Shown: in pieces, positions 28,501 through 64,000 of the stretch
Position numbering within the stretch: position 1 is the first letter of the stretch
How the letters are laid out: each line of letters starts with the position of its first letter
Origin: Trichoplax adhaerens
Taxonomy: Eukaryota > Animalia > Placozoa
DNA length: 64,000 nt
Reading direction: 5' to 3'
NCBI RefSeq assembly: GCF_000150275.1
Contig: NW_002060977.1
Coordinates: forward strand, 348,288 to 412,287
Translations under genes and position numbers: made by a program
Notes under the pieces: generated by a model
Told to the model about the DNA's origin: nothing
What the model saw: only the letters and a program-made list of their open reading frames with translations
Databases searched by the model: none

Positions 28501-31500
28501 AATTTTCAAGCTGGTTTTAGTCAAGTACAATTTTAAAGAACTAATCTAGGCCATAGCATCCTGTGAACCAAATTTATATATAATATATTATTTCGATATA
28601 TAGAGATATTAGTGGATACCGCATAGAACGGAAAAGAGAAGAAGGAGACTATGGAGTGCTCTCTTCACTTCAAAACAACGTTAAAACATTGTAATTTAGC
28701 AATAATTAAAACTAGTAGAATTCTATCGTTCTGTGATTCACCTAAATTAAACGTCATCAAATATACATTTCACTGAAATATTTTACGTCATATTATAGGT
28801 TTCTTTTACTATCTACCAATTTACATCAATACTTATTCTATTACAGATATATCAGTAAAATTGGTATCCATAGACTCGATCTTAGAATCTTATTTAATCG
28901 AACAAATCGAATTTTAAAAGAGCTGTAAGTCAACTCTTATGTTAAAAATTATGTAAGAAATGTATTATAAAGCTGTTACAAGGAATCTATTGATCAATGT
29001 AATGTTATGAAACACGTTTTTCATCAACCTCATAAAATATTCTAATTCGACGTTAAATTTGATGAATACTGTATCGTATTTTGGCTTCAGTAAAATAACT
29101 ATAATGCTATCTCTGTAGACTTACCAGCTTATTCTACAAATGGGAACTTTCGTAATATTAAGGCAACAGTAATCGTTAACCATGAATCGTTAGCCAAATT
29201 ATTGATAAAAATTTTCATGATAGACATTATACTAGAAATTTTCTAGAAGAAATCACAAGTAACGGAATTCAATTTCCGAACCTAGAGATCATGTAAGAGT
29301 GCATAAAATCATACTGTATACGTTACGGACATATATAAATTCATTTAAAAATTTTAATTGCAATCAAATTAATATTAGTTTGCAATACATAAGGTTAAAC
29401 TTAAAAAAGTTTTGCTTCAGTGCCGATATGACATAAACAGTTATAGTTTGTAATGTTCGTTTTGTATAACTCAAATTTTCAGAAATTTAGAAAATAACTT
29501 CCTACAAGGCGCATGTTTTACTGAATCCTACTATGACGTCTGGCCCAATATCCATACACTGTAAGATTATTCGGCCTGATTCTTGATCAATTTATTTTAT
29601 GATATAATCAAATTTTCAGTAAACTACATAATCTTATAATTAACTATTACATACATTGAAATCAGGCTTCATAAATTGTAATTAATTATGTGTAAGTGCA
29701 CGAAAAATGTACTACCTTTTTAATTATACCAAGCCACAATTATTTTCTCTTTTAACAGGATCTTAAAGCAAAATCGCATTCGAACCTTGAATAATGACTG
29801 TTTTTATAAATATAAGCGACTTCGTATATTGTAAGCTTTCCTAATTTGTAATAGTAAATTAATTTTACAACTCTCCTGCCTTTGATAAAATTTATTTGAA
29901 TTTTATGATAACACTTTACCGAATTATAAAATTATATTACTTAATTCTAAATTAAAAGTTGAAAGCTACCGATATTCCATAATAACAGCATTTTATACGT
30001 TATTACGGTCATCTATTTATAACTTATAATCTTTACAGAAATCTGGAGCTAAACATTTTGACCCATGTTAGTGATCAGGCTCTTCGTGGACTGACGAATC
30101 TTAGAAATGTGTAAGTATCAATGACATCACCAATAGTTAATATATTATATAATCGTTACATGCCTCTACAACAATATAAGCTTGTACCTATAGTACATTA
30201 TGACTACACGTTGATTTTAGCTTATCCTTTTTTATAAACATAGACTGAATTAATGCGTACTTGCCTATAGACATAGCATGCTAAGTCTAGCATTTGCAGC
30301 ATGTACTATTTCTTTGCAGCCACAAACAGCGTTGTCATCTACTAATACTTAGACCGTTTGTGACGAGTTTACTTCTATAGTCTTAGCTCTCTACATTATC
30401 TCTATTCCAAAGCCTTAAATACCACTAATTTCTAACCCATATCTCTACTCTTGCGTTCATTACAGTATTAGTACTTTCTTGATTGCTTCATAACAGCTTA
30501 TAAGCCACTCTACGTTAATTACCTCAATACTATAATTTTTACAATGTGCAAGACGAATCTTGCTAACTTACTAAACGTATTGCACTGATTTCTAAATTAC
30601 TTATAACCGTTATAACTCTTAGAAATTAGCTCAAAATCACTCTGGTCACTAAATAAAAAAATAATTAAGAAATGCTTAGACTGTTCTTTATCAGTGATAT
30701 ATGAGCCTCATTAAGTTAGCAAGACTAGAAATTAAGAATCTGATATGTTAAATACTGTACGCTGCGAATTTATACAGAAAAGCAAGTTGCAGTGCTAAAC
30801 TAAATTTAACTTAAAATTTCAACAAAGTTTTATTTCTACTAGTATATTGAACTCGCCTCCCACAAATTTCTACTGATGAATATTTCTTGACTCTACTTAA
30901 TCTAATCAGTGTTTACGGGGTAAATTTATATATATAATAATAATTTAATCTCCAACTTCACCGTAATAAGGATAGCTGAAAGTGGGCTACTTGAATTAAT
31001 ATGGTCTATTTTATTTTGTGTCTATACTCAAAGACACATTAATAGAATCGATGCTTTCTAGCTAGAGTAAGGTTTTATCATGTAAATTTACTTATAGTTA
31101 TTGCAAAACTACCGTACTGTTCGATTTTAACGTTTAGTCTCCCTACTATCTATAGTCAATTCAAGCTTAGATAATAACTAGATCTACGAAAAATTTATAG
31201 AAATGAGTGTGCAATTTTTAAAATATTCATTTACTTTTATAGGATGTCATCAAGAATATTTTTTTGTTGTTCCATCCCTACAACCGTTACATTTTGCACA
31301 CCATTTAAGAAGCAAGAAACTGCTTCTACTTGTTTGGACCTTATATCCAATAAATTAATATCTAAGGCACTTTGGGGAATTGCAGGAATTGCACTCCTTG
31401 GCAATCTAGTCATCATTGCTATCAAAGTACTGAAATACAGGAACCAGCCCGAATCTGTCCTAGGATTACTCTCTCAAAATCTTAGTGTCGCTAATCTGTT

Positions 31501-32461
31501 GCTATCATCGTACGTATTCATCATCGGTAGCGCTGATATCGCTTATCACGATCACTATGCAAAATATTCCGAATTATGGCTAAAAGGACCATTTTGTTCA
31601 TTATCCTGCATATTGGCTAGCATGTCCAGCTTAATTTCATCGGCTGTAATTATTTTTATGACCGTAGATCGCTTCATCAGTATAGTTATTCCTCACAAGA
31701 CCAACTTAATTCAACCAAAAAAAGCAAAATACATCATCGATAGAACTTGGATAGTTGTCTTTATATTTGTTACTATTCCAAATTTGTTCAGTATAAATGC
31801 TGAAGGCGATGCAAGAATTTATGGATATGTCGGCATCTGCCTGCCAGTCAATTATGATAATCCATTTTATCGAATGTGGATTGTTACATTTATTACTGGA
31901 ATAGCTCTTTGCTGGATAGCAACATCATACCTTTGGATACATATATCTGTTACAATGAAATTGTTAAGCAAAAAAACAGGCAAGTCAGCAAGAAGGCAAG
32001 AACGAGCTATTGCTTTAAGGATACTGCCAATTATTTTAAGTAACTTGATTGCATGGATACCATTCTTAATATTTACCCTTGAAATCGCTCGTAATCCAAG
32101 TAACATGCCTGAGACTACTTTGCAAATCACATTTCTTATAGTATTACCCATCAATGCAGCTATTTATTTCGGACTAACTGCCTATAGTGGTCTAATAGGT
32201 ATTAACGCAACAAGTAATCAAATGCGACAATATTATGGTCGCATCAGTAGCCGAATAATGACTAGAAAAAGTATTCTTGGCAACAATACTAACCCTGTAC
32301 AACCAGCACGACGATGTACAGAGGTAGTCATCTGCCAAATTAGAACTGAGACTAATGAAGGAGAAAGATTATACGCAGATTCTGGGACATATATAAGGAG
32401 GATATCGCAAACTCCCCAAGATCAAATTGCTGCCGAAGTGCTAAAGAATTTACCCAATTAG
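13525..32461 (+). CDS. Leucine-rich repeat-containing GPCR (LGR; type C/RXFP-GRL101-like hinge) with ~40 LRRs; multi-exon, 5' signal-peptide exon not located
   Basis: AG/GT-bounded in-frame exons read by hand. N-cap 13525-13675 (TYGHDQCKSVSTNKNKCCRDGNNLICQNILP...). LRR exons, all phase 2-2 and mostly 72 nt: 14228-14299, 14444-14515, 14724-14795, [N gap], 15693-15776, 15891-15962, 17319-17390, 17579-17650 (ELQCNEIATIEAGAFNGLDNLRHL), 17823-17894, 18021-18083, 19454-19525, 19607-19678, 19813-19884, 20039-20107, 20235-20312, 20548-20619, 20737-20808, 20990-21061, 21190-21261, 23098-23169, 23312-23377, 23476-23547, 23662-23742, 23952-24023, 24190-24255, 24601-24666, 24840-24911, 25203-25274, 25380-25451, 25644-25715 (DLSSNNISFIPQGAFNSLTNLRKL), 27329-27400, 27495-27563, 27762-27839, 28031-28105, 28244-28366, 28604-28690, 28847-28924, 29224-29292, 29483-29560, 29759-29830, 30039-30110. 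Terminal exon 31243-32461 holds the hinge and 7TM. Confidence 0.9.
14802..15193. other. Assembly gap (N) inside the LGR LRR exon array
   Basis: Run of N; could hide additional 72-nt LRR exons. Confidence 0.99.
21641..22273 (+). mobile_element. Solo LTR family A in an LGR intron
   Basis: TGTTACA...TGTGACA, 633 bp, perfect TSD ACTCT (21636-21640 / 22274-22278). Confidence 0.9.
22436..22680. repeat. Old dispersed repeat family D, copy 2 (inverted), in an LGR intron
   Basis: Reverse complement aligns to ~4318-4562; boundaries approximate. Confidence 0.6.
26248..26875 (-). mobile_element. Solo LTR family A in an LGR intron
   Basis: TGTCACA...TGTCGCA, 628 bp, flanks ACTTC/ACTGC (1 mismatch); homologous to the other family-A copies. 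Confidence 0.85.
31243..32461 (+). CDS. Terminal exon of the LGR: Cys-rich hinge + rhodopsin-class 7TM domain + C-tail
   Basis: 405-aa ORF preceded by acceptor ttttatag. Hinge FFCC-x8-CTP...STCLDLI; TM1 GN; TM2 NLSVANLL; ECL1 W...C (WLKGPFC); TM3 DRF; ECL2 GICLP; TM6 WIP; TM7 VLPIN. These motifs match RXFP/GRL101-type LGRs. Confidence 0.95.
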
Positions 32462-43621: not shown

Positions 43622-44273
43622 ATGCTGAAAATAAAATTATTTAAAGTTCTCTATTGGCTAACGACCTATTCTCTAATTTCATGCTTGGAGATAGAAGTTA
43701 TAGAATATGATACTTTAAATTGCCAAGAAGTTCGCACATTTGTTTCACAGTCATGGAATCTATGCAAGTTAACTGGCTTTACAAAGTATCAGTTAAAGTA
43801 CAATTATATCTGTAAAGCGGAAAATCCGCTTCATATTAAACCCGAAGATGAAAAGAGAAGTGTCGCAGGTATGGCTTATACCAGTCGGTACTTTCATTTC
43901 AATTTTAAGCTTGGAATAATATATAACTCTAACTTTCGTAACTATCTCATAGTAAATAGGACACCAAACTTCTAACTTAGATAACTATTTTACACTACTC
44001 CAATTTTATATTCAATTATTTGTAGGCATGCCTGAGGAGCTTACGGTGTCTAGAAAAGAATCTAACCAATTCTTACAACACACTGAATCAAAACGCCAAC
44101 TATCCAGTGAGTTTTATCCTGTTTACACATCATGCTGCGACTCTGGTAGAAACGAAACCCATACGGAATGTAACGTTATAGATATTATGGTTGGCTGCAA
44201 TGATGAAGTTAATTTTGAGTTTACCAGTACAGGTGCCTGCGAAATGACTAAAGAAATGAATAGCTTGAAATAA
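43622..44273 (+). CDS. Insulin/relaxin-like prepropeptide 1 (8-Cys variant), 164 aa, 2 coding exons
   Basis: Exon 43622-43868 (GCAG|gtatg) joins 44026-44273 (tgtag|GC) across a phase-1 intron in the C-peptide. Signal-like N-terminus MLKIKLFKVLYWLTTYSLISC; B-chain with C-x13-C-x15-C; KR; C-peptide; KR; A-chain QLSSEFYPVYTS-CC-x10-C-x8-C-x13-C. Confidence 0.8.
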
Positions 44274-47200
44274 AATTTATCCTGTTTGCGACTGATAATC
44301 TATATAAAAGCTAAACTAAAATCGATTTCATTTCTATTATTATTGCATTCACAAACGTAATTTTGAGATCACGTATCCTAAGAATTTTACAATTTATTCA
44401 TATACTCGTTTAAGGCTCTAATGGCAATTATTTTCTCATCTTTGGTATCTATAATGATCCAGTGACGTATACATATATCGATTAGTAACGATTATTAAAT
44501 CGTTTATCTCTTTACGAATCGCGGACTACTTATTTAAAATATTGTGTTTAAACGTTATATGGTAGTCACATTTCTAGATGTTGTGTTTGGGTAAAATTTA
44601 TGACCACCACTAGATGTATAAAATAGTGACTTGTTCATAACATTACTATAGTATATCAATATAATTGCAGTTATATTACAGTATTAAGATCTCAAATTTC
44701 TTTAAAGTGCTACGTACATCAAGCATTTACAAAGAATTTAAAGCTTTGGTAGGCCTATGGATCTAGAATAAATACTATTCTCTTATATAGAATTGTATCT
44801 GGAACCAAAATATCATGTAATTAAGAATAATGTTACCAGAAAGGTTGTGTCCAATTATAATTGCTTATTTCCATATTCATTGGTCGTAATATTCTTACGT
44901 TTGTCTCAAAAGAATTGACTATTATAAATAAAGAAATTCTATCTATTCAATGCTTTGACTTCGCTACTAAGTACTTTCGCAACTCATAGTCTGAAAAATT
45001 CTAGCTTTTAAATACGACAAAAATTTCATACTGAATCTGTTATATTCTGATTTCGGTATTGCGCTTTTAGTGTTCGAAATACAGAATAAGATCAAATTTA
45101 ATGGCCAAAATCATATCACCTTTAAGTCGTTCTTAAGACTATAAAGTTATATACGATAGTAAGATTTAATGATCATTTTTGCCTCTAGTCAACTACAAAC
45201 ATTAAATGAAAAGATTTTTAATGATACCAGCTTTCCTAAGTAAGGTCAGCAATTACTCAGTAAATTCTAGTTGCCACGGCCATGGTTGTCAATGTAATCG
45301 GGTATTGTTTAATATATTTTGCATCTTAAATACGAGTATACAAATGAAGTGATCTGTAGTACTGACATAAATTATGCATTTTGTTTACTAAAATTTTCCG
45401 TGTATTACTCTTAAATTAATTACAGACCACGTCATTCCTTTCTCAGGAAAGAAATTTGCTTGCAAATAAAAGATATAATAGATCTATAATTTACGAATAT
45501 TGCTTCATAGTACTTGTAGTTACAAAATAAGAAGAATGTAATTATAAGCATTTACTACTATGGTATTATTCCTTTACTTTTAGTATTCAAGAAAATAGTA
45601 TAGCAATATTTAGCGTTATCGATTACGGTTATATTGATCATATAAATTATAGCTATTGCGTGCTCTGTTCATCACAAGAGCCCGTAGCTATGGTATGTAA
45701 CTAATGTTTGCGGTAGCTACCAGAACATGACTGTTAAATGGTTTTCGCTCCGTTATCATCCGAGCTTGAAATATGTACAAAAGTATGCCGACAATTAGCT
45801 GATTGATATTGTACGTAATTAGGTATGTAGATTTTTCAAATCACTTAATTTCTATGGCAAGATACCAAAAAATCGATTAATAGCTTGTGTCTAGAGCAGT
45901 TACGGAACTAAAATAAGCTTACTAAACATGATATCATATCATTATTATCGAGTTACTCTATTTCCCGCTGACATTTAATAAAGTAAAGTTGCAGTCATAA
46001 CAGTAAATTTATAACTTTCCCAACCTAAAATTATAAGTGTCGACAATGTCGCTAACGGAATCGATGTTATAAAGAGTATTACTTTTGTTAAAATTTTATG
46101 TATTAACTAGCTTCAATACGCAAGCCTTAAATTCTATCGTCTAATATTTTTGAGATGTATTCTAGTAGAAGTAACATACGAGTAAAATGTAAATTAATTG
46201 TGGCACACCAGTTTTAATCAAGACATGAATTTCAGCTATTGTTTGAGTCTGTACAACAATCTATTAATAGCAATTTTTCATCAGCTTACGAATACAAACC
46301 ATGATAGCATTTTAATACTGTTACATTAACGAAGAAATATCCAAATCTAAACTTATATAGAGGAGAACATCGGCTCTTTTAGGATTATAAGTCTTAAAGA
46401 TAAGAATGAATTAGATTAAATTCTGAATAATTGCAATCGCTCCATAATTAGTTATTAGAGGCTACTGTAGTTTATTTCATTGGTAGAATAAAAAGAAAAC
46501 AAAGTCATAAATTATTGATTGCGCTTAATAAAATCGTTATCATGTATAAAACATAAAGACCGACGTGGTAATTAACGTACAGCACAATAACGCTTTACAC
46601 AGCCATGATCACCGATGGAGTACATTGATGGCAGTATTTATTCCAATAGGAGAAATAATTAATGTATTAGTTCAATTGCGTAAATTTCACTGGAGTAAAA
46701 TGTGAGCTATAAATAGCTTTTCTCTATTTTAAGCTTCCTTATTTAAATTACCAATATAATTGTTGTAGCCATTGTGATTATCTATCTGACTTCAACTGTA
46801 ATCCTCGTTTTTATAGCTATTTGTCATTCACTTAGATTTACGGCCGGAATTTGGTCGATGTAGAGATCAAAAATTTGATTACATATGGTAAAACAATCTG
46901 CTTGATACTGAAACCTTTAAATTTTTGCTAAAAGCTAGACTGAGTAATTTTTGCCTCATGCCTGCACAAATATCAACACTGTATGACTATAATACGTATC
47001 AAATACTATTTTATTGCAATCGCAATCATTCTTTATTTTGTTTCTACATATTCGTACATCAGTAATTCTCATAATCAGAGTTAAGAAGAGAGAACAATTT
47101 GTGAAGATCAATTTTGATTTTGATTTTTACTGTGATATGAGGCTTCCTTCATTGCTTATCTGCATGCAGTAGCTATAACGGTATAATCTCAAGCGAAAGG

Positions 47201-49249
47201 GCAATTAGCTTTTGCTTACGAATTTTATAAAATTTGAGTTGTAAAATTTATTCAAATAAAAGCTGCTAAATTCTATCGTTAATAACTGACAATTTACGCT
47301 ATTTAAAGAGATTAGCATAGTATTTATACATACCATGCTGATACATAAGGTGTATAAAATTCATTTAAAGAATGTAATTTACGTGACTAAACTTTGTTTC
47401 TGTAAAATTGTTGCGACAGATGTTACTGATTATCGTTGATTTGGCAAGTTTTAATACGGTAAATCGCTTTTTCCACTCCGAATGCGAAACTATTTCTTAT
47501 AGAAAGATGTTAAATTGTACTGTATACACTTTTCAGTAATGTTCTTCCTATATTATCGTTACAAATCTAAATTTGTAGCAAGGAAAAGTTAAACTACTCA
47601 AAAAAACTAAGACTATGAGCCTACTGTCAGGTTTATCCTCCCTGGCATTTACTTATGGTACGACTCTGTATACTAACGATTTCCTATCATCAGGAGGAAT
47701 GGTAATCACTATTCACTCTTTAAATAAAACTGAATCCAAACTTTATTGAAAAGCCAGTCAGTTTATAGTCAATTTACGTAATCATTAGTTATCAGTACTA
47801 AGACAATGTTATAAAACTATCCGTTTATCTATAAAAGAATATGTAATGTCATTGATAACGGTATTTTTAACAAATACCAAATTATATTATCTGGCGAAAA
47901 GAAGATAAGCATTAGTTAGTGAAAGTTTCTTCACACAAGTATGGATCCGAATGCAAGCAGTTGCAGTAATTTCACGATGCTTTTGATACAGTATTCTAAT
48001 CTGTTTTATTAGATACATATGCTTCTATATTGCTATTTAGTTTATATTTTTTGCTATGATTTGACTGTTAGCTCTCTTGATTCAAGATAAATACCAGGTT
48101 CTCATTTTTTGTCTGGTCCTGGTGTATATTGTGCTTCATATATCACTATGGAACCCTACACCGTAAGAAATTCGTAAAAACGGCAGATGCTGGTGCCATC
48201 TTTCATGCTAAATGTTCTTATTCAGAAATAAATGGAGACGTAATCGAGATCAAAATAGCCTGCATTCCTGCATTGATTCTACTACTATTTACAATTTTTC
48301 AGTTAAATAAACGCGTATATTTACTAAAGGAAGCAAGTAAACCCAACAACTACAAGATTCGCTTGGTTTACGTGTTGAAACTACTCAATACCAGTACTTT
48401 ATTATTCACTTACAGCTTGTATTCTATTAGCAGCAGAGACGTACGTATATTCCGAATTATTAATTCATCCCCACGACAATCATATCAAAAATATTTATCA
48501 ATCCGAGATATTACAAAAACATTGACGTTAGCGATAACAGCAACTTATTTCCTCGTCAAATAATTGTATAGTGTGATAGAGAGCGATAATAATCTGATCA
48601 ATAAAACTAGTATACCCGGGCTCACATGAATATGCCTCTGAATCTTCTGATATTTTGCACTGCAATGATAATACAACCGTAAAGTACGCGTACTTACTTC
48701 AATTATTACGGTTTGATCGGAAGAAAAGCTTCAGGATAAACGATATTTTGTTACTTTCGGCTACACATAGCTACTTGACATGCACCAGTGAGCTACTACC
48801 AATAAAAAATACGGTAATTCGACTTACAACTTCCGTCAATACCGATGGTACTATAAAGCACAAGATTGCAAGATTAGCATGTTAATAGTAATACACACTA
48901 ATTACTATTAATTAAAATCCAGCAGCAATTGACTAAATTCTATTTAGTGATGGTAAGTACACTTATATCATCAAAATTTTAGCGAAAATTTTGAATTATT
49001 CTTATCATATGACCAGTAATCAGCTGTCACACTTCTAAAATGTAAAAGCTGTTTTCGGACAAAGATGATTCTTCACGTATAGCTATAAGCATTTCTAATA
49101 TTTAACGGGGTACATCATTTATAGGCTCTATTTTGGTTATTTTCACTTTTGAAAAGCGAATTCATTATAACATTAAAGCGATTAGTTATGTACTATTTGT
49201 AAATCCCATATTTGACAGTAAGAAAAAGCGCTATAATCCTGTAAAGGAT

Positions 49250-49880
49250 TGTTACAGTATTATATACTGTATTAGAGTAGAAATATCTATGCTAGGATAA
49301 TTCATGTTAGACTATCCTTATTTAGTTAACTTCTAATTTGGATATACTGTGTTTTAATATAGCATTGACTTTTTATGACAGTGACACTTATACACATGCT
49401 GAAATTAATAGTTATAATTGGGAATGCAAATCATCTACTTACAGTTCGAATCATTGTGATTGTAATTTACTTATGGTAGACTGTAAATTATCATAAAAAT
49501 GTTCCGTGATAGGACATATCGTAATCTGACTATTCTGTATTAGTCATTACATGTCTATGTTCGTTAATACAGTTGTCTGCATTAAGGGAGCAGTAGCTAT
49601 AAGTAATATCTAATTCAGTAAATGATTCCAATGTTAATTGTATTAACTATGACTCATGAACTATTAAGGAATAGTATATAAATGCAGTATATCGTGAAAT
49701 AAAGTGAATTCTCAAACTTAGTGTTTAACGCAAAATACGATGCGTCTAAGTCTTTGCGTAGTCTGCTAGTAGAGCAAAAGTGTTTGTGATAGTGCAGATA
49801 TCGTTCCTTGATACGTGGTTCAAGGAATTGACTTATTGATCGTATATTAAGTTATCTTGTTGCAAAACTTTTTTGTGACA
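49250..49880 (+). mobile_element. Solo LTR family A
   Basis: TGTTACA...TGTGACA, 631 bp, perfect TSD AGGAT (49245-49249 / 49881-49885). Confidence 0.9.
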
Positions 49881-52800
49881 AGGATTAATAATTCACTTAA
49901 ACTATTAGTCGTCACTAGTTTGACAAAAACTAGTTGCTTAATTAACTAAGATTAAAATATAATATTATAAAATTCTACATATAGTGTTCTAATCTAACAA
50001 GCTAAAAAATTTATAATAACGTTGCTAATAATTTATTTTATAGACTTCATTTAGGTACTGTAGACTTATTTTAGGACAAATCCAATACTGAATGGAAATT
50101 CCTATTTTGGCGCTGCCTTAGTTTTACGAGAGTTAAGATATGAGCTATCACAGTGACATCAGATTTCGGAAAATGGATCTAGTCTAGTACCGGATATTAT
50201 TCGACTTTATTATTATTACAGCACACATTGAAAGTGCATGATTAATAAGCTGTATTAGAAAACCTATTGATATTATGCTACAAAAGCTAGAATAATTTAA
50301 TCTAAGTTATTGAATGAAAGAATAAAATGATGCACCGGTAATCCTTCATTTTAACATCACAATGAATCAATTACAAGTATTTAAGTTGATATTGTCATTT
50401 ACCGTAAAAATAATGAGAAAATTGAATAAATTTTCGTACCTATGTATCGTACCTTATTCCGTAATCATTATTTTAATAGATACTTTTATTAGGTGTTCGA
50501 GTGCTAAGTGGAAAGGGCGAATTGTGATCCAAAGATGAGATATACGAGTATACACATCATATGGGTGCGTATATGATTTTTATCTATGTGCTACCCATCT
50601 ACTGGGCTAATATAATAATATTTTTTGTTATATCGAATAGCAGATAATCATCAAAAGTCAATAACTAGTGAGATATTTTAAAAACATCTGTATTTGCGGT
50701 GTTAATTATTTAGGAACAAATTGTTTATTTGTTTAAAAAAATTGCTGAAATCATTATTATTGCATTAAGCCCTGATACATTCAAATTTATGTTGTTGTAC
50801 TAAACATTGAGATGTATCAGTAATTGTAATTTGGCAGGCTTAAAATAAGGTAATATGTGATCGCAAATGTTTCAGTCAAGGTAATCAATCAGAATTGTAT
50901 CAGAATCAAAAATTACATCTAAAAAGTTAGTTATGTTCAAGAGTAGGACTTTCCGTCAATTTGACCATCTCACCAACTACTTTACTCTATGACTAATACA
51001 ATTGTACTTAGACTCTCTTTCTTAGAGAAGGTAATCATTTTTTATCTAGTAATGGAATTACGCATGTTTATGATGGTTCAAATATTGTGATTGGTATATA
51101 ATTAAATAAAATACTAACTCCAGAAAATGCTCTATGATTTCAACATGGCTTGATCAAGGAATACTCTCAAATTTCCTTTCCCTAAAAAAGATAGGGGAAG
51201 AAATGATGTAGAATAGTTTCGTTATAATTTACGCCAAAATGTGCCAGTTGTTCGATTGCTATCAACCGTAGAAGTAAAAGATCTCATTAGATTCAGAAAG
51301 GATGTTCTATAAATATGATTTAACCATCATAATGCACATTATTCTAAATAGGAAGGAGAAGTTCGTAAGGCATCCAAACATTTTGCCAATATCTATCAAT
51401 AATCTGGTCAAAGATTGAACCTTACTTAGTGTAGTTATTTTAGAGACATTTTTCGTTTAGGCAATAAAAGAGCAAATTTAAAGGATAACCATATGGTTGT
51501 ATAGAAATTGAATAAAATATCAAAGACTTACCCTTTGCCGGTTGTAATATTACATTTAAAAGAATTCAAGATATATTATTAAATTCAATTAAAATGAAAT
51601 AACAGATCCAGTATTATTTTTTTATCTGAGGCCTAATATCAACTTCAATTATTCGGCAAATTAATATAGCTTCATAATTATCATTACAGGCGGAGCGCAA
51701 TATTGAAAGCAATACATAATCCATTTTCAAGCACTTGTTATTAGGCTCATTTCAAACATATAACCTAACTTCGAGATATCATCGAGGAGGACAACCTGAT
51801 TGGGCTACAGTAAAATGTTACTGATATTGTCATTGATTTCAAAATAAATACTGCATGATTTCATATTCAATTCTACTAGACCGAAGCGGCCCACTAAGTA
51901 GGATCGCACAAGACCTAAAATATTTCTAATAGCGATACAAGGTACTATTTTGACGAAGATATTTCTTTAGCAGGTGTCTTTGAGCAATTAATATAATTAA
52001 CGAGGAAACTTTATTTGTTATAGCTAAATGATTTTGATTTTTTGTATATCATTACATCTTAGCTTGAGGTATTGCTAAAAGATTATCAAGTAGTATATAG
52101 GAACAAGTTAATTAGAGAAGGTGATTAATAGCTTAAAATTTATTAAAAAGACTAACATACTAAAATAAAACTTTCCCGTAAATTCCGTATAGGAAAATCT
52201 ACAAACGTTGCATCGCAAATTAATATTATTGAAATAATTTAACCTAGACTATAAACATGTTTAATAACTTTCTCATCAGTTTATTACGCAAAAACTACTT
52301 TTTGTTCTATTACCTAAATAATATCACGTCAGTTAAAATCAATATTTTGCTGAACCTACTATCTTAAGTTTGTATTGAAGGTAGTAACAATGATGAAAGC
52401 AACAAATTTGAACCATTAACTTCTTGATTTTCGAAGCATCTACTGAAACCAGGATATATAAACACATTAAACTCTTTTTAATCTATATTAACGTTTAAAA
52501 TGTCATAGCCGCCGTTAAGTTACCATATGTCATATGGTTACCTTCGCAAGTTCGAACTCATATGCATCATTTAATCCATGGTATGGCTTAATTTCCATTT
52601 AAAAACTGCTCCAAATATCACGATTTTAAATACTTATAACAGGAATGATGAAAGGATCTAAAATAAGTCTGAAATATTAGTTAAGTTCGTATTATTAAAA
52701 TTCCGGATCATATTTTCAAGATCTATCACAAAACTGATTAGCTACAAAGTAATATAATTTACGATCTATATGATATTATGCTTCCTGAATTGTATTTCAG

Positions 52801-55800
52801 GGGAAAAAATACGTATGCTTTTATTAGGGATATTACTACTCCAACAGACAGAGCTTAAACACATCGTGTTCCACGTGGTTAACGTAAATTTTCAAGAACT
52901 CTTAAAAATTCTCTTTATTGAACTATATACCACAATTTACATTTCTTCTATCGTAGTTAAAGAGTCTTAGAACAGTTAGCGCTGAAACCTTCCTATAAAT
53001 TAGATGGTGATCTAAGGTACGGATCACCACATAATGAAGACAAAGATATTTACGAATATAGTTATCTAATGACGGATACATGATAGTCGAATTATACTAT
53101 AACGATTACAAATTGCATCAAAATTATATTATAATGACAACTGTTTCTTTCCATCAAACACATGCAATTTAATCCACGTAAGGCATATACTCGGAGATTT
53201 ACGTCTACTGTACATATACGTGTTATCGTTAAATATATTTAACGTCTTGCATGAGAACTAATTTATCTGCCGATGCGGGAAATTCTCGGGGTTCTCCGAC
53301 TAATGTCCTAATTGTACTACTTCTACGCAAATAATCAATACCTGACCGATATCTGTAAGTCCTAGGCTACTCTCTATTTGAGACCAATTAATGATCCAAA
53401 ACAACGTTGAATATTATTTGACCTTATGGTCTAACTGAGACAATATAGATCACGATGGATCTCACTGCTGAACGTAGCTAAATCAAACAGCGCACACGAT
53501 GGTGCTTAGACTTTTCAAGCAATTATAATTACTTATGATTGCTGATAACTTAAAATTTTTAGTATAGACCACTACAAATTAAGACATTTTGAAGTAGGTG
53601 TACGATGTCGCAATGAAGGAACGCTTACATATGATTTCGCTCGAACAAAACAATTTCAGTACTCTACCAAAATGATGCTATCTGAAATAATATCTATCAT
53701 GGTATTATAATATCTTTAGTTTTGTAAAGTATAAATTTTATAATTTTGGACATAACATGTACTTAAATAAGAATAGGACTTAAAATAGGATATTTATGTT
53801 TTTAGAAGATTTTTATGTATTTACTGATATATCGATTACTTGCTCATACCAAAATTAGTAAAACTATTATTAGAGTATTTTGATATTATGATAATGACTA
53901 TATGTTTAACGGCACAGTCACCGAACGTTTATCTAGACCAGAGTTTCAGTAAAAGTGTAATAACGAAGGAAAATCTGTTTAGATATTTACTAGGGTGATG
54001 AATACTAAATTAAGAGATGAGATAGCAGTAATGATATGTTTACGTACAGACATTTACTATATAAACAGAATTTCTCTTAAAATAAAGATAACTATTGTTA
54101 ACGACTTTAGCTCAAAACTTGACTTTGCGTCTTAAGTTAGCTTTTTTTTCTCGTTCCAATTACTAAGTTGTGACATATGGATATCTAAGCATACATAGTT
54201 TATTATTATGACCATCAATAATTGCTAATAAGTTTGGAATAAAATTTGCATTAGTTTACATTTTGATGATTTAAAGTAGGCATGGATTGGTGATGTAACG
54301 GTACCACTTCTTCAAGATCATGATGAGCCGTTTAAAAGCTACATAAGCGCGGTTTTACATTAAATTATCTTAGTAACATGCGATTCCTTTATCGTATTTA
54401 GAAGTTTTATCAGCCATACATTTATGATCGATTATTAGGAAAAATACAAGTTTATATATATATATAATGATCTAGACAGATATTAAACACATGTACATTT
54501 TTTTGCTCTGGCTCTGACTCTAAGGCAAATCAGAATCGAGATATATATTGCAACAGAATGACACCAATTTGTAATAATATCAACTAATACAGTATTGAAG
54601 ATATGTCATCATGTATAGTAATAAGTTGAATGCTTTAGCAGATTTGAAATTATCCAGCATCATTTCTAACAGCTTATTTTAAAGTAACAATCAGACATGG
54701 TCCAATATTTTCTAACTAAGATGATTAATTTATTCTAAGTTTGAATATCTATCATTAATTACAGTAAGTTAATAAGCGCAGCAGTATCGATATAGCATAG
54801 TGGTATTTACTAAGAAATGGAGAGAGTAGTCAAACTTAGCAGCCTAATGGTGTACTTATCGTTGTTTACTCAATCTAGTAAGCTATAAGTTATTGAGATT
54901 ATGATCACTAAATCTAATTTGAACTTCACTATAGGGGCCATGGAAGATTGAGTTACAGTAAACTCATAAATGTTAGCTCTATGGCAACTTCAAGGTTAAA
55001 TCCGATATTACTTGGCCCTACAGTTTTCCTTATAGTATTTACTTAATACAAGTTATCATAAGATCTTTATAGGAATGACAACGCCTTGGTAACTATTTGT
55101 AGAGTTATTTTCCATGATAGTTTATTAAACCCATTTCAGCAGCAGTAACTAGAATGTTTTAAAACTATGTTGTTTTTGGCAATTAACATTAATGGATATT
55201 TTTGTCGATAACTTTCAATAGCTTCATGACAGATTTTAATTTAATTGATGTTATAGACTATCTACATAGTATGATACTGTATCTTTGAAGGTTGAAAATA
55301 AATATGCTGAAAACTTGATGTCGTCAATTTCTAATTTTGAAAATCTCTTCAATTCTTAATAGTGTTGAAATAAATACCGCATTTTCACCCTTTTTTTGCT
55401 CACAAAACGACGCCTATCTATAATTTGCTATTATAAAGTACAAAATCTTTAAATTAATGCACTTGGGTTATGCGTTGAGTAGCTAATAAGCAGACTTCTT
55501 ATAACCGCTAGGTCTCACCTCAATGATACAGTTGTAAACCGTGATGGTATACGCTCAATGATCGTATTAATTTCTATCTATACTCTACTTCGATCTGTCA
55601 TGTTAAGAAAATATAGACAATTTTTAGCGAGCTAGTAGTTGGACTTTCGTCTTAAGACAATAGCGTTGTGTATCTCATCGAATTATCAGCTCTCAATTAA
55701 TAACAGAGCTATCGCTATACAAGTATTTCAACTCATTAACGTCGATAATAACTAATTTTTATTGATAAAGCTGTAATGAAAAAGGAAGTTTATTTTAAGC

Positions 55801-56311
55801 TTGGTTAATTGATGCGATAAAACAAGTACTTATCTACTGTAAACAAATGATTTATTGATCTTATTAATTCTTTCGTAATGCATCTTTTAGCATGACCCAT
55901 CAAGAACGGAATGGAAGAAAAGAATTATTAAGCATATTGAATTAATAAGAAAATAAATTCAAAATGTTCATATCTTTATTTAATAACAGCTTTGATAAAG
56001 ACTTTGCCTGGTTTAATAATAAATTTTATTTTGTTTATTGATTCTAAGATAGTATCATATAATTAATTTCGGTATTAATTATTAACTTCGCTTCTGGCAA
56101 TGACAGAGAGGGGTATAAATAATCCATCAAAAATTCTTTTTAATGATATTACAGCTGTGGCTAGTTGAGCTTAGAAAGCTATTTTATCTGCCATAAGAAA
56201 ATTTCTACCGTCACTTGAATCCTAAACATTCAAACTAGCTAAGAATTCATTATTCGTTTTAGGAGTTTGGTAGGCGTTATTAATCTTTCAACAAAAATTC
56301 TAAAGAGCAAC

Positions 56312-58794
56312 ATGAAAATTAAACTTGAGCTGGTATCAATTTTCTTATTTCTTATTTTGGCTGAACCTGTCGTCTCCGTCGATATTGTTTATGAAGCCCA
56401 CAACTCATTAAGCTGTGCTAGCCAACGTGCCGCAACGTCTTATTTCTGGGATACTTGCCAAGGTGGTTTCTATTCAAAATACTTGCAAAGTTACGAAGCA
56501 ACCTGTAATGGTGCCCGTCGACGCAGATCAAATTCTGATACCGAAAAGAAAACAACTACAAATGAAGGTAAGAAACTTACACTAATGCACGTAGAGCAGT
56601 TAATGTTTATATATCAGCATGAATCGAGATTTCATATAATAATTTACTAATTCAAAACTGTTAAAAATCGCGTCTGAGATGCAATTCCCGAAGATTTAGA
56701 CAAATTATACTACTCACATTGAAATACGTTCATAATATAAGTCAATTATAACGCAAAATATATCAATTTGCGTATAGTGCCTCTTTCTAAGTTCTCAGCA
56801 ATATCTATTCACAATTATTTATAAAATTAGTCATTAATTAAAAAAAGGAAATTTATTAGCCGTCTAATATTCTCGAGTTTATACTGAATATATTCACAAT
56901 TTATCTTGCTCTAAATTCAGTCATTTATTCTTATACCATGTCGGAAAATAAAACTTAAAAGTCAGGATCAATGAAATCGCTTTGCAGTAATTGTTCAAAA
57001 TGGACAATATACCAATGCTCTTAATTAACGAAAAAAGTTAACTTAATGTCATATATATGTTACTAGTTAAGATTTTACAGTCCATAGATGACTATGTTGA
57101 CTATTATTAATAGAATATATATGACATAATAGGTAAATTTTCTAAAATTTAACGCCCATTACTTCGTTTACTGTTACGGTACTTAATGATGTTAATATTT
57201 ATACGCCAGGTGTCGATTTCCGTGTAATTATCAAATTCTACAACATGTTTTCAATTTATTCAATACGTTAATCAGTTGTTAACTTTATATGAAGTTATTT
57301 GCTCTTCCCGAGGCTTTTTTCACCATTAATAACCGTTTGAGATTTTATTCAGGCCTTTACCTTGTTTAGTATCATCGTAACAATAGTAATTTTTTTTTTG
57401 TGCTAATGAAATGAATGAAAATAAGCATTTATAGCACCGTAGCCTTAATTCTATATTTTCCGTCGAATCTTACCCACTTTATATTGCATAGTTTCGCTTC
57501 TAAATAATATTATTAGCATACAAAAAGGCAATATTTATTTGTTTGCTGTAAAGTGATCAGTACATCTTCGTCGTTAATTGTATAGTTGAATTATGCTAAA
57601 CTAATATATTGCACGCGATGTTTTAATTTAAAGTCAAGAAGCATCATAAAATCATAAAGTATTAATTCTTAAGATTACAATAATTCACTGTATTGAATAT
57701 TATTTTCTAATCTGTTAATCTAGTTGTCACAATCTCACTCTTACGAACGGACTCAATAGATACTTTCGTATTGAGTTGAGAGCTACTTTATTCATCTTGA
57801 GGCAGATTACCATTTAGTACAGTCTACAAAAGGAACTCAATAAACAATTTTTTACTCTTTTTATACACTCTTACTGTAATCTGACGTCGCAAATCTGCCT
57901 CTGATAAGTAAATTAAATTAAATGAATTGTCAGAGCCGTACATAATATAGAGTTAGCTCCCCAACACTATTAAATTGGATTCTCTCTAACTGCAGCATTT
58001 TCTTACTTATTTACCGTAAGTTTTGCCTCGCTAAAAGATCAATTAGAGTTATAGTTTAATAGAATTATACAGGGTAACATTCTTTCTTGAAATTGATATC
58101 ATATATTTTGCACACAATGTACCATTTTATATTCTGTTTCTTTGTTTTTATCTTACTCTTATGGAAATCAATAATTTCTTTTAGAATTAATTCTCTTCGC
58201 CTTTAATAAATATAATGCTATGCGTTGATAATAATTTATTATCATTGAATCTCTGATGTTCGAGAAACTGCTGTCTTGTGCCAAAGCAGAAATTTTATTA
58301 TCTACTACTATAAATGATCCTGATAAATTGATCTACTATACGAAGAAGTGTTAAAATTTTGATTATATTATAAACTCATATAAAAATTGTAATAAAATCA
58401 AACGAAAAGAAATAAGTATGTTAAGTCAAGCAAATTTTTAAGTTCATTTTTACTTGGTTTAGGAAATAAATTATATATTAATAACAAAGACTCTTTTATC
58501 TTTTTGCATTATAGACTTGAACTCCAAAGTCTTTATAAGTNNNNNNNNNNNNNNNNNNNNNNNNNNNNNNNNNNNNNNNNNNNNNNNNNNNNNACTAGTT
58601 TTTTAAGAGACAGTCCTATACGTGAACGTGAAGCAGAAGAATCTAGTGGTCCAATGTGGGGTCAATGCTGTGGTGAAGAAAGTAGTTGTAATAACGGTGA
58701 CTTATTAGTCCAATGTGGTGATGAAACCAATTACGAGAAAGGCAAGCCATACGTATGTGAAATCTCACGGGAATATTACGGATATAAAAAATAA
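56312..58794 (+). CDS. Insulin/relaxin-like prepropeptide 2 (8-Cys variant), paralog of the 43622 gene; second exon crosses an N gap
   Basis: Exon 56312-56567 (GAAG|gtaag, phase 1): signal peptide MKIKLELVSIFLFLILAEPVVS, B-chain C-x13-C-x15-C, then RRRR. Exon from 58515 (cattatag|AC TTG AAC; DLNSKVFIS-gap-TSFLRDSPIRER) ends in A-chain GPMWGQ-CC-x5-C-x8-C-x13-C-EISREYYGYKK*. Confidence 0.8.
58541..58593. other. Assembly gap (N) inside the C-peptide exon of insulin-like gene 2
   Basis: Run of 53 N. The reading frames on the two sides do not match with this length, so the gap size must be an estimate. Confidence 0.99.
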
Positions 58795-61167
58795 TTCCAT
58801 CATAAGCAAATGACCACATGGCGAAATATGGCTAATGCACTAAAAGAAGGTATTCACGTAATGGAATTGTAGTAACAATCTTATCTAGAGTATTGAAAGT
58901 AACTGGCAAATGGCAAAATTAGTAGATAGCCAAATGCTTAGATTCAATTCTTGAAATATTTATCGTCTTTTACTGATTGGAGTTGTAGAGAAAATTTAAG
59001 GAGTAAAACGTTCTTAGAGAATAGATTACGTAAGCTACTCAAAAACTACTTAAAATTGATTTTTAGTTGCTGTTTTCAACACCAAATGAAAGTATAATTT
59101 TAAAAAGCATCTAATTAAACTATAATTCGTTCGCCGATAAGTTAGCTAAGTACGGTATCTATGTAGCCCTTACGGCACTAATTAATTAGGTCTCTACAAC
59201 CTCTGATGATATGTATCGCAATCAATAAAAGACTGTTAATATGAAGAATAGCAATGATTACTTATCTAAACGCTTCTAATTCTTTTCAACCGTCATTATG
59301 AAATATAGGAACTAATATTGTAAGCTGTTGCCCTAGGTGTTACTGACGGTTCATACCAGTAATTTATATGAAATTGGTACTAAAATTTGTAGTATTTATT
59401 CATAATATGATGAGCATTATTTTAAAATGTCTCCGTAAGTATTACGACACTACGTTATCTACAATTCTAGAGGACGTAAGAATATTGTTATTAACATTGT
59501 TTAAGCGCTGTAATAGTCTCTACAAATTGAGGCAGGTAACAACTGCAGTACGATATGTTGTAGTTACATATAAATAAATTACACCAGCGGAAACGCGATG
59601 TAGGGTGCGGGATAAGCTAGTGATACAGTGGTGATTTTCAAAGTATTTCTTAAAAGTGCTTATTGCAATTTGTTACAAACTTCGTTTCCCTGAGGTTATT
59701 GGTTGAGCTATAAGAAATTTCGATTCAATTTAAATCAATCATACGAGTGACTACCTTACCATAAACCACTAGATGCACCTAGACAAGGAACTCTTCAGAC
59801 AGGCAGACATTTTTATACCTAGATAACTGGTGTAAATCTTTGCCTCTCTTTTTCTTAATCTTTTATACTAATTTAAGAACATTCAAAACTTTATATAACT
59901 TAGTAAAATAGAATAGATATCGATATGATATTATTTAATTTAGAAAAAATAGCGAATTACAGAATCGAGCAACCCTTTCAAGGAGATTATAACGATTGTT
60001 TGGAATAGTATTATTATTATAACGCATGAATCCGAAATATCCGACCGTCCGAATAGAGTTTCCTGTCCAATATAAATTTAGTGGTCTATGATCTCACCAT
60101 CGCATATGTCGTAATAGGCAGACTACGGCTATGTCGATATAACTAATCTATTAGAATCTATGTAGATTAGCCATGACTAAGCTTGACAATATTGATTGAG
60201 GGAATAAATTCATCTATTACCGAGATGAAGTAGGCAAACAAGGTGATTTTAACTGCCTTAAATTATAATATAAGTGATGTACCTGGTCTTAGATTAAAAT
60301 GTCTGATCAATGTCTTAGCTTTTATGAAGAGAGACCTTCGTACTCAATAGCACAACATTATTATCTATATCATTTTGAAAATAGTTCGTATTTGTATCCC
60401 GTGAAAGGTCTGTAATTGCTTCTGTGCTGCTATGTATACTCAAGCTATCTGATCGTCAGGAACTGCCTATTTAGTACTTTAGTTTTGTCAAATCTACTCG
60501 GTACAAAAATAAAGCTTGTTTACTCCTACTAATATAAGACTACGAGTCGTATAAGACTACTATTACGACGTGACTTGTATGCTGATTGAACCGACCGTAC
60601 ATGTACCAGTGACTGTAGGTTTGTGTAGAATTTCAAAGAAATAAAATATCTTAATGCTTTGGTAAAATGTAATAGAAACACCAAGAGCCAATTGCTGTTT
60701 ATGTGGAGTTTGAACCAAATTTAATGTAAACGCTTTGAAAATTTAAAAGATCCAATTAAATGCTGCACTATGGCTGAACAGCTTTCAACCAGTATACAGT
60801 AGAGAGCGCACCACGTCCCTGAAACACGGGTCTAATATTGCATGTATCATGGTAAGGACTTATCTACTTTATTTTGTATGCAGTTTAACTATTACGTCGA
60901 GGTCGGCGCGATTTTCGTTGTCATTTCTGCAGCATCGAAAATAATTAGATATAAGAAAAGGAAAGTTAACGTGAAATTTACACCTAATATCTGCGCGTAT
61001 TCTTAACGCAAATGTTTGCGTGCGTTTTAAATTAAATGACTAAATAAGATATGTGTTATTAAATTGCAAAAGTATGTTTCATGTTTTGATTACAAGATTT
61101 TAGACATGTATTTAATATCGATCTAATAGTAAATATTCAACATACGTGTAAAACCTGAATTGAAGCT

Positions 61168-61267
61168 TTAATTTACTATCGGAAAGGGGTCTATTCTTAG
61201 AACTAGCATATTTGTCCCTTAATTTACTATCGGAAGGGATCTATTCTTAGCATTCACATATTTGTCT
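61168..61267. repeat. Two-copy ~50-bp tandem duplication
   Basis: ttaatttactatcggaa(a)ggg.tctattcttag...catatttgtc occurs twice in tandem. Confidence 0.7.
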
Positions 61268-64000
61268 AGGTGAGTATTAAATACTAAATTCTTATTTAGA
61301 TACTTCTTGCTACAGTCTTGCGAATTGTACAATTCCTCTTTAAAATTGATTTCTTAATTTTATTAGCGGTAACGATAGCGTCTGTTTTTTTTTGTATGCT
61401 CTCAGTCAACTGAAGCGAGATCGGCAGCTAAGCTTCCACGTGAATATCTACCTTTATTCTGATATCTCACCACCTTATATACTGTACAATACAGTGCCTT
61501 TACTGATCTAGTACGGAACAAAACTAGTGCCGTTAAGTTCTGATAAGGTTGCAATACAACCGATATGAATACAATACAAGAAATCCTATAATTAGATACA
61601 GAGACGCTGGTAAATCCGTAACAATTTTATATAGTTAAGTTTCAGAAGGAATACAATAGGCGTTGTTAGGAATGAGCTATTTTCCTAAATATCAATAGAA
61701 TGTTACGCGCCGTCGATTATCAACAGATATTGTTCATGACGAACTTCACAATATATATTGATTATAAAGAAATGAATATTAATGCCACAAATACTTGTAA
61801 TTGAAGATATCAAACCGTTAATTTTATTGCCTGGAATAGAAAAATCCGATATCTTATATGAGGCTACGGCAAATGAATAAATAGCTAATTTACTGAAGCT
61901 GTTAATTCATAAAATCAATACATACAGACAGTATATTATATAGCCGCCTAACCCTCGATTATCTTACGGTACGTTATTTCGTGTATCTAATTAGTCATTT
62001 TCCGGTAAAATACTGTTCGCTGTTATTTCTTTGAATACACCATATTTTAATGTTTTAATTATAGAATTTTCATCAATAAAACATTAATATTCGACTATCT
62101 CGAGATTACTTTATTTGATGTAAGTCCTTCTCATGCAGGAAATTGAAAGAAAAGCTAGCTACAACATTATTGATTTGTAATAGCTTGCGTTTAAGATACA
62201 TCTTCGTGTAATCTCTGTTTGATTACATGGAATACTTGTTTTTTTACATCCTGTCTCTACTGGCTTATTGTTTTTGCATAGCTATAATTAAAGGGTCTAA
62301 AATTATAGAAAAGGTACTAAGACATCCTAATATACAAATAGTGCAACTGTGCGGTTTCATCATACTTGTTACAAATCTACAATTTCACTGTGTTAGATTT
62401 GTAACCAAGTACTACTTCTAGCCCTTCTCTAAGTTAATTACCCTATAATTAGTTTCATAATATAGAGGCTAAAAATAGTTTATAACTTAAAATTTAATTT
62501 CAAGTATGTATTGCAATAGTAATACTTATATCACGTAACTATGCACAACAAGCTATCTGGTTATCGACTTAACTCCTCTGCAGTCTCACTTAAGGCTACA
62601 GCTATCGTCTCTAAAATCACATACTAATAGGAGGCGACTACCTTAATGCCCAAAAGCAATCCTTGACATCACTAGTCTACTCAGGTCTAATGCTACCATC
62701 TTATGATTTTAGCTGCGTCTGTGGTGTATGGATTCTTAAACCTACATACTATCACTGTATTTCCCTAACACATAACTACTGTAATTAGCTGAAATCATTA
62801 CAGGATCTCACTATAGAACCTGTTTTGTTATAAGATAAAAATTATTATACTGTTCCACACAATTCTTTACTGTAAACTGCTACTATACCTTCAAAACACG
62901 CACTACTGTAATTAGATAAAGTCACTCCAAAGCAATTTCTATCAATATAGGACCATTCGGCATCTGTTGCATTAGTACAAATTGAAGGAGGAAGCAGAAA
63001 AGGAGTTATCTCATACTCGTATACTTGTCATCATTACGCCAATCGATGGAGATAGGTCTGCCATAACGGCTATATGTGCGTAGATTTAAAATTTCATAGT
63101 AAAATAATCAAAGATATTTCTGTTCCAGAAAAAAATATACAGTATATCGTACTGAATGCAAAAATTTCGGCGCATGCAAAATTGTAAATACAGCTTAGCC
63201 ATTTATTAACATTTTAAGTAAGATCGTACTTTCTAAACTAAATATCGAGACACGGAGCAGGGTAATGATTTTTGAACATTATCGACAATGTGTGATATAT
63301 TATATTTGATAATACTGAATTATAATTATGAGGCATTTACGCTCTGTATCGGACACAGCCTGGAGTTCGTGGCATGCGACCGATTTCTAGACCAAAATGA
63401 ATTATATCTTCTGACGAATCTTAGAGAGTTCTGCATCATCAGCGACTACTCAACAAAAATTTCCCTCCCCCTTCATCGTTCCAGCATTACTGAAACTCCA
63501 GTTTTTCTATACTGTTCCTGTTATTGCCGCTACTTCAAAGAAATTGTTGAGTAAAGTTAGGTTAGATTGGGACTTTGGCTTGTGGCATTGGTATGAAGTA
63601 CCGTAGTTTTAGTTGGGGAAATTTTTTGTTAAGGGGTCCCTGGCATCATATACCTCTGAATTTAAGAAATTCTTAACTTATATCAATGAAAGGACTGAAT
63701 TTTAAAGATAAATCGTGGTTAGCAAGCTCCTAATTACTGGTATACCTTTAATATTAAATGGAGACTACAGGTATGAAAATTAATGATCGTCAATACCTCT
63801 ATCGCCATGAATCGTTTTATTGATTTATCTTCAAATTCAATAGGCCTCAAATGCTAATGTGAATTGCTTACATAACACCAAGTAGTGCAGTCACAAAATT
63901 TTATGATATACCCGCATTCAAAATTGGTTAATGATTCATAACGACCTAGAGTGTTAATAAGAAAAGGTAAAGATTAAGGTTGGAATCTTTAGAAAAGAAA

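Follow-up and report, generated by a model that had tools for sequence, protein, structure and literature searches.

Two paralogous genes for secreted eight-cysteine precursors in Trichoplax adhaerens, with a probable divergent insulin/relaxin-type architecture

We analyzed a 64,000-nt stretch of Trichoplax adhaerens DNA (C1380:348288-412287, hereafter the window; coordinates are positions within it unless a contig is named) and found two two-exon genes, gene 1 and gene 2, that encode precursors with eight cysteines distributed over two domains, B' and A', on either side of a connecting peptide. The two genes are probably members of a small family of secreted two-chain prohormones with a strongly divergent insulin/relaxin-type architecture. 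As read from the aligned sequences, the divergence lies in a B' cysteine spacing that is two residues longer, a longer and variable first loop in A', C-terminal extensions that each carry one extra cysteine, and a partly conserved connecting peptide. Placozoans are animals without neurons, in which behaviour is coordinated by peptide-secreting cells, and they are central to dating the divergence of insulin and relaxin signalling. The features of the two genes are as follows.

43622-43868 (+), gene 1 exon 1, from sequence and translation; ends in phase 1, after the first base of a codon
∼43622-43684 (+), gene 1 signal peptide, from translation
43685-43852 (+), gene 1 B' domain; Cys codons at 43721, 43763 and 43811, giving C-x13-C-x15-C
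43853-43858 (+), gene 1 KR site after B', from translation
43869-44025 (+), gene 1 intron of 157 nt, GTATGG...TTGTAG, phase 1, split codon G/GC (Gly)
44026-44273 (+), gene 1 exon 2, with the remainder of the connecting peptide and the A' domain; stop codon at 44271-44273
44064-44075 (+), gene 1 N-x-F-L motif in the connecting peptide, conserved in the alignment
44091-44096 (+), gene 1 KR site before A', from translation
44097-44270 (+), gene 1 A' domain; Cys codons at 44133, 44136, 44169, 44196 and 44238, giving CC-x10-C-x8-C-x13-C
56312-56567 (+), gene 2 exon 1, ending in phase 1; 98% identical to residues 1-85 of protein P0006
∼56312-56377 (+), gene 2 signal peptide, from translation
56378-56515 (+), gene 2 B' domain; Cys codons at 56414, 56456 and 56504, giving C-x13-C-x15-C
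56516-56527 (+) and 56546-56551 (+), gene 2 basic sites RRRR and KK, from translation
56568-58514 (+), gene 2 intron of 1947 nt, GTAAGA...TTATAG, phase 1, split codon G/AC (Asp)
58515-58794 (+), gene 2 exon 2, with connecting peptide at 58515-58629; stop codon at 58792-58794
58630-58791 (+), gene 2 A' domain; Cys codons at 58666, 58669, 58687, 58714 and 58756, giving CC-x5-C-x8-C-x13-C

Both precursors have a hydrophobic, signal-peptide-like N-terminus, and reading the splice sites showed that both introns are of the GT-AG type, in phase 1, and inside the region coding for the connecting peptide. The first-pass annotation of this DNA had described two two-exon genes with these exact cysteine spacings and phase-1 introns; all of this was borne out, with a correction to the exon 2 boundary of gene 2. 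The further conserved positions that it named also proved correct in our alignments (A1 and A2), where L-x-C, W-x-x-C, D-E-x-N-x-E and C-E are invariant columns. The B' domains are 46-56 residues long with three cysteines and the A' domains 52-58 residues long with five, so that at least one disulfide would have to join the two domains if all cysteines are oxidised. Spacings of 13 and 15 residues in B' were found in gene 1, gene 2 and an orthologue of gene 1, and the 13 also in P0006, a protein of Trichoplax sp. H2. The A' spacings were 0, 10, 8 and 13 in gene 1 and its orthologue, 0, 5, 8 and 13 in gene 2 and a third gene (see below), and 0, 6, 8 and 13 in a metagenomic gene-2-like exon. The 10-residue loop of gene 1 holds an N-glycosylation sequon, N-E-T, at 44151-44159 (N-E-S in the orthologue and none in gene 2).

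Basic sites flank the connecting peptide at both ends in all members (EKR/SKR, RRRR/RER, DKR), the second site being KR in gene 1, R-E-R in gene 2 and D-K-R in the metagenomic relative. Such a precursor would fold in the endoplasmic reticulum with formation of four disulfides, and prohormone convertases would cut it at the basic sites in peptidergic secretory cells, so that a disulfide-linked two-chain hormone would be released along with fragments of the connecting peptide. The connecting peptide itself shows more conservation than C-peptides usually do: the motif [IV]-S-x3-[AS]-N-x-F-L is common to both subfamilies (44064-44075 in gene 1; 58517-58540 plus 58594-58605 in gene 2; L022:214-262 in the metagenomic contig). 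This motif may represent a second bioactive peptide or a folding element.

Homology searches were run on single exons or on natural database proteins (P0001, P0002 and P0006), and the whole-genome searches covered 105.6 Mb in 1414 contigs (∼30% G+C). In six-frame searches each gene 1 exon retrieved its gene 2 counterpart, with E values of 0.011-0.014 for exon 2 and 0.08 for exon 1. The counterpart exons lie in the same order and on the same strand, 12 kb apart, and the exon profiles matched only gene 1, gene 2 and one further copy in the whole genome. Such exon matches in the same order and orientation are not a chance result, and genes 1 and 2 are paralogues, as had been proposed, even though they are only ∼30% identical. 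Between paralogues this far apart, the A' alignment keeps 15 invariant columns (the domain has 58 residues in gene 1).

Contig L014 of a placozoan-like Logan assembly (sample SRR30664517) resembles the window at gene 1 only and carries an orthologue that agrees with gene 1 in its start codon, its cysteines and the position and phase of its intron. Exon 1 is 56% identical to L014:4619-4867, with proportions of non-synonymous (pN) and synonymous (pS) differences of 0.22 and 0.74. Exon 2, compared with P0001 and L014:5008-5258, shows 64% identity across its open frame, rising to 72% in A' (pN 0.17, pS 0.73). Synonymous sites are saturated in this comparison while pN stays low, which shows gene 1 to be under purifying selection. 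For gene 2 against its paralogue, pN/pS was ∼0.5 on few changes and is uninformative.

A third locus, C1395:1191483-1194205 on the reverse strand, is a copy of gene 2 with 90-95% identity (exon 2, at L013:5484-5717 on the reverse strand, is 90% identical). It marks a segmental duplication in which window positions 56468-64000, with gene 2 and at least 5 kb downstream of it, match L013 (C1395:1186000-1194300, reverse strand) at 90-95% nucleotide identity; the 5' half of exon 1 of the C1395 copy is lost in a run of Ns. We rejected the idea that this copy is a mere haplotig, because TrispH2_008345 and TrispH2_011168 exist as two separate genes in Trichoplax sp. H2. Pieces of gene 2 tile P0002 and P0006 at 88-98% identity, and the C1395 copy is 99% identical to P0006. 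TrispH2_008345 (P0002, RDD39333.1, partial) is the orthologue of gene 2, and TrispH2_011168 (P0006, RDD37131.1, 164 aa, full length) that of the C1395 copy. An open reading frame (ORF) of 69-84 aa at 59368-59577 (+), 3' of gene 2, is also kept in the duplicated copy (L002:649-903, reverse strand) and may represent an exon of an adjacent gene.

Word searches for full-length homologues returned P0001, P0002 and P0006 only, and a scan of JGI metagenomes with profile A1 found no relatives. Against 1.84 billion representative proteins, the A' profile matched three placozoan-type fragments and otherwise only spurious Sushi repeats. A relation to Sushi domains was rejected: the matches to P0004 and P0005 were sums of short matches over 10-11 repeats, and Pfam Sushi gave no match on the exons. 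The family appears so far only in placozoan or placozoan-like sequence, with three genes in T. adhaerens.

The connecting peptide of gene 2 is interrupted in the assembly.

58541-58593 (+), assembly gap of 53 Ns in the gene 2 connecting peptide

An ORF at 58504-58794 that reads through these Ns was discarded as an artefact; exon 2 begins at 58515, after an acceptor AG at 58513-14 and upstream of the gap. The frame before the gap (codons from 58517) differs from the frame after it (codons from 58594), as expected when a gap length is an estimate. In the gap-free paralogue on contig C1395 only ∼14 nt occupy this position. Aligned to the two H2 proteins P0002 and P0006, which run continuously across the gap, the window pieces leave four residues uncovered. 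The gap hides about four codons, continuity and frame being supported by these homologues and not by the window itself. P0002 joins ...T-T-T-N-E to D-L-N-S-K-V-F-I-S-L-A-N-A-N-S-F-L-R..., which fits the acceptor at 58513-14, and the junction NE/D is identical in the H2 models P0002 and P0006. The same acceptor and coding sequence are kept in the more distant metagenomic contig L022. The A' domain of gene 2 lies entirely 3' of the gap and is unaffected. The window has a second assembly gap, of 392 Ns, at 14802-15193.

The gene 2 family has been recorded before, though only by a name in supplementary data. In Najle et al. 2023 (PMC10580291), Table S5 calls TrispH2_008345 and TrispH2_011168 'hypothetical_relaxin-like' and assigns them to an orthogroup (OG_4732) found in all four placozoans studied, with highest expression in 'peptidergic_delta' cells (fold change 25-28) and a signal peptide flagged for TrispH2_011168. 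The authors chose this name by manual curation, from sensitive diamond-blastp matches to invertebrate neuropeptide collections, and the main text of the paper does not mention insulin or relaxin (PMC10580291). Two peptides detected by mass spectrometry, TTTNEDLNSK and TTTNEDLNSKVF, are given there with one spectrum each and with no match in a T. adhaerens propeptide, which fits models broken by two assembly gaps. Both start immediately C-terminal to KK and run across the gene 2 exon junction, and thus support its splicing and its processing by a convertase. The published 'neuropeptide' TTTNEDLNSKVF is probably a fragment of the connecting peptide of a larger, disulfide-linked hormone.

Gene 2 and its C1395 copy are the orthologues of the OG_4732 members TrispH2_008345 and TrispH2_011168, with which they share the junction and all eight cysteines. 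For gene 1, neither the protein databases searched nor Table S5 (PMC10580291) contains an entry. A full-text search with sequence snippets and the locus tag returned no paper. The earlier description of the genes as easily missed was right for gene 1 and for the T. adhaerens models and wrong for gene 2 and its paralogue, which are annotated in Trichoplax sp. H2; likewise its reservation about described peptides applies to the gene 2 family, which matches the Table S5 entries, and not to gene 1, which has no match. The 2023 table thus lessens the novelty but leaves some of it: the literature searched appears to hold no description of gene 1, of the cysteine framework or of the link to a gene cluster on C1395.

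This cluster consists of three tandem eight-cysteine precursors at C1395:850050-875100 (L025-L027), with spacings C-x13-C-x8-C and CC-x9-C-x6-C-x18-C. Table S5 (PMC10580291) names TrispH2_010965 'hypothetical_prorelaxin' (OG_4552), and we located its published peptide D-I-V-T-D-F-K-K-E-P-S-Y at C1395:859815, in the T. adhaerens orthologue. Like the window genes, the cluster has C-x13-C in B' with Arg at +4 and Trp at -3 (C-x3-R-x6-W-x2-C), a basic site (KRRR) after the third cysteine, an N-x-F-L motif (as N-x-F-L-K-F-G-K) and five A' cysteines running from CC to C-E, in a register set by eye. It is unlike them in its spacings and in a proline-rich A' core. Comparison of the two groups by hhalign gave a probability of 55% and E 1.2e-4 for exon 1, and a non-significant E of 0.11 for exon 2. 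The cluster and the window genes are probably distant sister families, which suggests a wider placozoan eight-cysteine family.

An insulin/relaxin-type reading of the window genes is favoured by the order of parts, with a signal peptide, B', a connecting peptide between basic sites, and A'. The phase-1 intron, present in both window genes and in the L014 orthologue, is weak evidence since phase-1 introns are common. In A', a loop of 5, 6 or 10 residues separates the CC from an invariant C-N-x3-[IL]-x3-C, a pattern that fits the second half of the PROSITE insulin signature (PS00262); a variable CC-to-C spacing with a fixed C-x8-C would be expected of a disulfide-closed loop followed by a helix. 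After the second B' cysteine there is G-F and then aromatic residues, a stretch that can be compared with C-G-E-R-G-F-F-Y of insulin. An AlphaFold model of gene 1 exon 1 alone had an overall predicted local distance difference test score (pLDDT) of 56, with a helix at residues 34-50 exactly across the first two cysteines and then a turn and a strand (pLDDT ∼60-71). The model of the partial H2 protein P0002 (pLDDT 43) had low-confidence helices ending at CC and between the next two cysteines.

Other observations weigh against this reading. No Pfam family was found at E ≤ 10 on the four exon products, on P0002 or on the natural full-length P0006, so that the insulin-superfamily domains looked for by this route (PF00049, PF03488) did not appear; a match of P0001 to YMR265C_C (E 0.12) was set aside as chance. 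The B' spacing is 13 and not the near-universal 11 of insulin B chains, and the chains are about twice as long as those of insulin. Sequence searches of the PDB with profiles A1 and A2 and with P0006 returned no insulin chain, only chance matches (an Ig light-chain motif and phage PHIKZ068), and hhalign of A' against the canonical Trichoplax A chains gave a probability of 0.4%. The A' domain of the C1395 cluster lacks C-x8-C, so this spacing is not conserved across the wider family, and the argument from it is tempered. From the published tables, the mass-spectrometry support consists of single spectra and the relaxin-like name of a manually curated diamond-blastp match.

Further searches were less telling. 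Foldseek of the low-confidence gene 1 exon 1 model against the PDB returned nothing, and the ESM Atlas gave no usable match (0.79 to a spider-toxin cluster, which is chance level). A six-frame search of the whole genome with PF00049 also found nothing, but the controls were equally silent, and the result is uninformative. Only two of the four canonical Trichoplax A exons gave weak Ins_beta matches (E 0.017-0.03), and none matched the PDB. Exon-level searches are thus insensitive even for accepted placozoan insulins.

Taking both sides together, we lean slightly toward descent of the family from the insulin/relaxin superfamily. The earlier claim that these are insulin-like precursors is supported by the order of parts, the basic sites, the phase-1 intron and the eight cysteines, but not by hidden Markov model, PDB or profile evidence, and C-x11-C and CC-x3/4-C are absent. 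In A', CC and C-x8-C are present, but the first loop is longer than the three (or four) residues of CC-x3(4)-C-x8-C. Because C-x11-C and CC-x3/4-C were looked for and not found, we leave the genes outside the insulin family and describe them as working like members of it.

The strongest competing explanation, which we judge somewhat unlikely, is that the cysteine-rich prohormone is peculiar to placozoans and folded in its own way, unrelated to insulin and convergent only as a two-domain, convertase-processed, disulfide-linked product. It accords with the uniformly negative insulin homology tests (full-length P0006 included), with the restriction of A' profile matches among 1.84 billion proteins to placozoan-type fragments, with the B' spacing of 13 and the proline-rich A' core of the C1395 cluster, and with a connecting-peptide motif that is unlike a typical fast-evolving C-peptide. 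On the other hand, the traits taken together match the insulin superfamily (signal peptide, Cys-Cys helix, spacer between two basic sites, CC-loop-C-x8-C and a phase-1 intron in the spacer), exon-level searches have the low sensitivity just described, and an independent group obtained a relaxin-like match (Najle et al. 2023).

A very unlikely alternative is that the functional products are short linear peptides of the connecting region, either TTTNEDLNSKVF or peptides ending in N-x-F-L, with the cysteine domains as mere carrier or sorting parts. Mass spectrometry did detect connecting-region peptides only, one of which was chosen among 60 curated neuropeptides, and N-x-F-L is conserved in both subfamilies and in the C1395 cluster. 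But the cysteine domains are the best conserved parts of the precursors, as the invariant A' columns attest, mass spectrometry of small peptides is not expected to detect disulfide-linked chains of ∼100 residues, and the detected TTTNE... stretch has no conserved counterpart in gene 1. The idea that the genes are chance ORFs, pseudogenes or products of misassembly, for which one could cite the gap-broken T. adhaerens models and the missing Pfam domain, is already refuted by orthologues with saturated synonymous and low non-synonymous change, by conserved splice sites and phase, by the annotation of both paralogues in Trichoplax sp. H2, and by the published peptide and single-cell expression evidence.

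The reading as a divergent two-chain prohormone can be extended to a receptor. A 405-aa open exon at 31244-32461 (+), ∼11 kb upstream of gene 1 and on the same strand, encodes a rhodopsin-family seven-transmembrane domain (PF00001, E 1.4e-17) and is presumably the transmembrane exon of an LGR-type receptor gene; this linkage was noted after the fact. In the broadest form of the proposal, the window genes and the C1395 cluster would together form an undefined, Placozoa-restricted structural class of insulin/relaxin peptides (at least six T. adhaerens genes), with a B helix longer by two residues, three disulfides between the chains, one of them a C-terminal clasp, and a connecting peptide that is in part conserved. 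The peptides of this class would be ligands of the expanded placozoan LGRs, with genes 1 and 2 paired with a giant LGR gene ∼11 kb upstream. We consider this full combination unlikely and offer it as a conjecture.

If the family is a true insulin/relaxin derivative, the fold would tolerate an extended B helix plus a fourth bond that joins the chains C-terminally, and its members would be candidate ligands for the LGRs of Trichoplax, of which 46 have been reported and all are orphans to our knowledge. If it is not, the family would represent an independently evolved two-chain hormone. Either way there are modest, concrete gains: gene 1 had no annotation, assembly gaps break the T. adhaerens models of both gene 2 and the C1395 copy, and TTTNEDLNSKVF probably has another interpretation.

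Four insulins have reportedly been predicted in Trichoplax. We located four canonical six-cysteine insulin-like genes, three in tandem at C1408:4177822-4186910 (L019, L021) and one at C1411:6556976-6557440 (L023), with C-x11-C in the B chain, CC-x4-C-x8/9-C in the A chain and phase-1 introns in the two that were checked. The C-P-I-H-G-K at C1408:4186425, at the end of a canonical C-x11-C B chain, corresponds to the C-P-I-H-amide epitope of TrIns3 (Varoqueaux et al. 2018), and a review gives CC-4X-C-8X-C as the Trichoplax insulin signature (PMC12702675). We infer that these four genes are the four described insulins; as they lie on C1408 and C1411, the window genes are different from them. The canonical placozoan insulins and cnidarian insulin-like peptides (ILPs) share with the window genes two exons, a signal peptide, the B-C-A order, basic sites, a phase-1 intron in the C region and CC. 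The canonical placozoan insulins have six cysteines and short chains, whereas the window genes have eight cysteines in C-x13-C-x15-C and CC-x5/10-C-x8-C-x13-C, with no detectable profile similarity between the two.

Four predicted disulfides in an insulin-type precursor are also known from molluscan insulin-related peptides (MIPs), C. elegans beta-type peptides and anthozoan ILPs. The extra cysteines of MIPs and nematode beta-type peptides are N-terminal. In anthozoan ILPs the additional pair is located in the B-chain N-terminus (PMC8698791), unlike in the window genes, where each domain has its extra cysteine at the C-terminal end. These two cysteines (C3 and C8) might pair with each other between the chains, as the first-pass annotation proposed.

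The two-chain architecture predicted for the window genes is common to the relaxin/INSL peptides, ligands of the LGR-type receptors RXFP1/2. At the position of the second Arg of the relaxin cassette, R-x3-R-x2-[IV], the window genes have Ser, and their B' spacing is 13. In our own comparison the cassette is nevertheless loosely resembled by an invariant Arg 4 residues after the first B' cysteine and a hydrophobic or aromatic residue 7 further on, which would lie on the same face of the helix.

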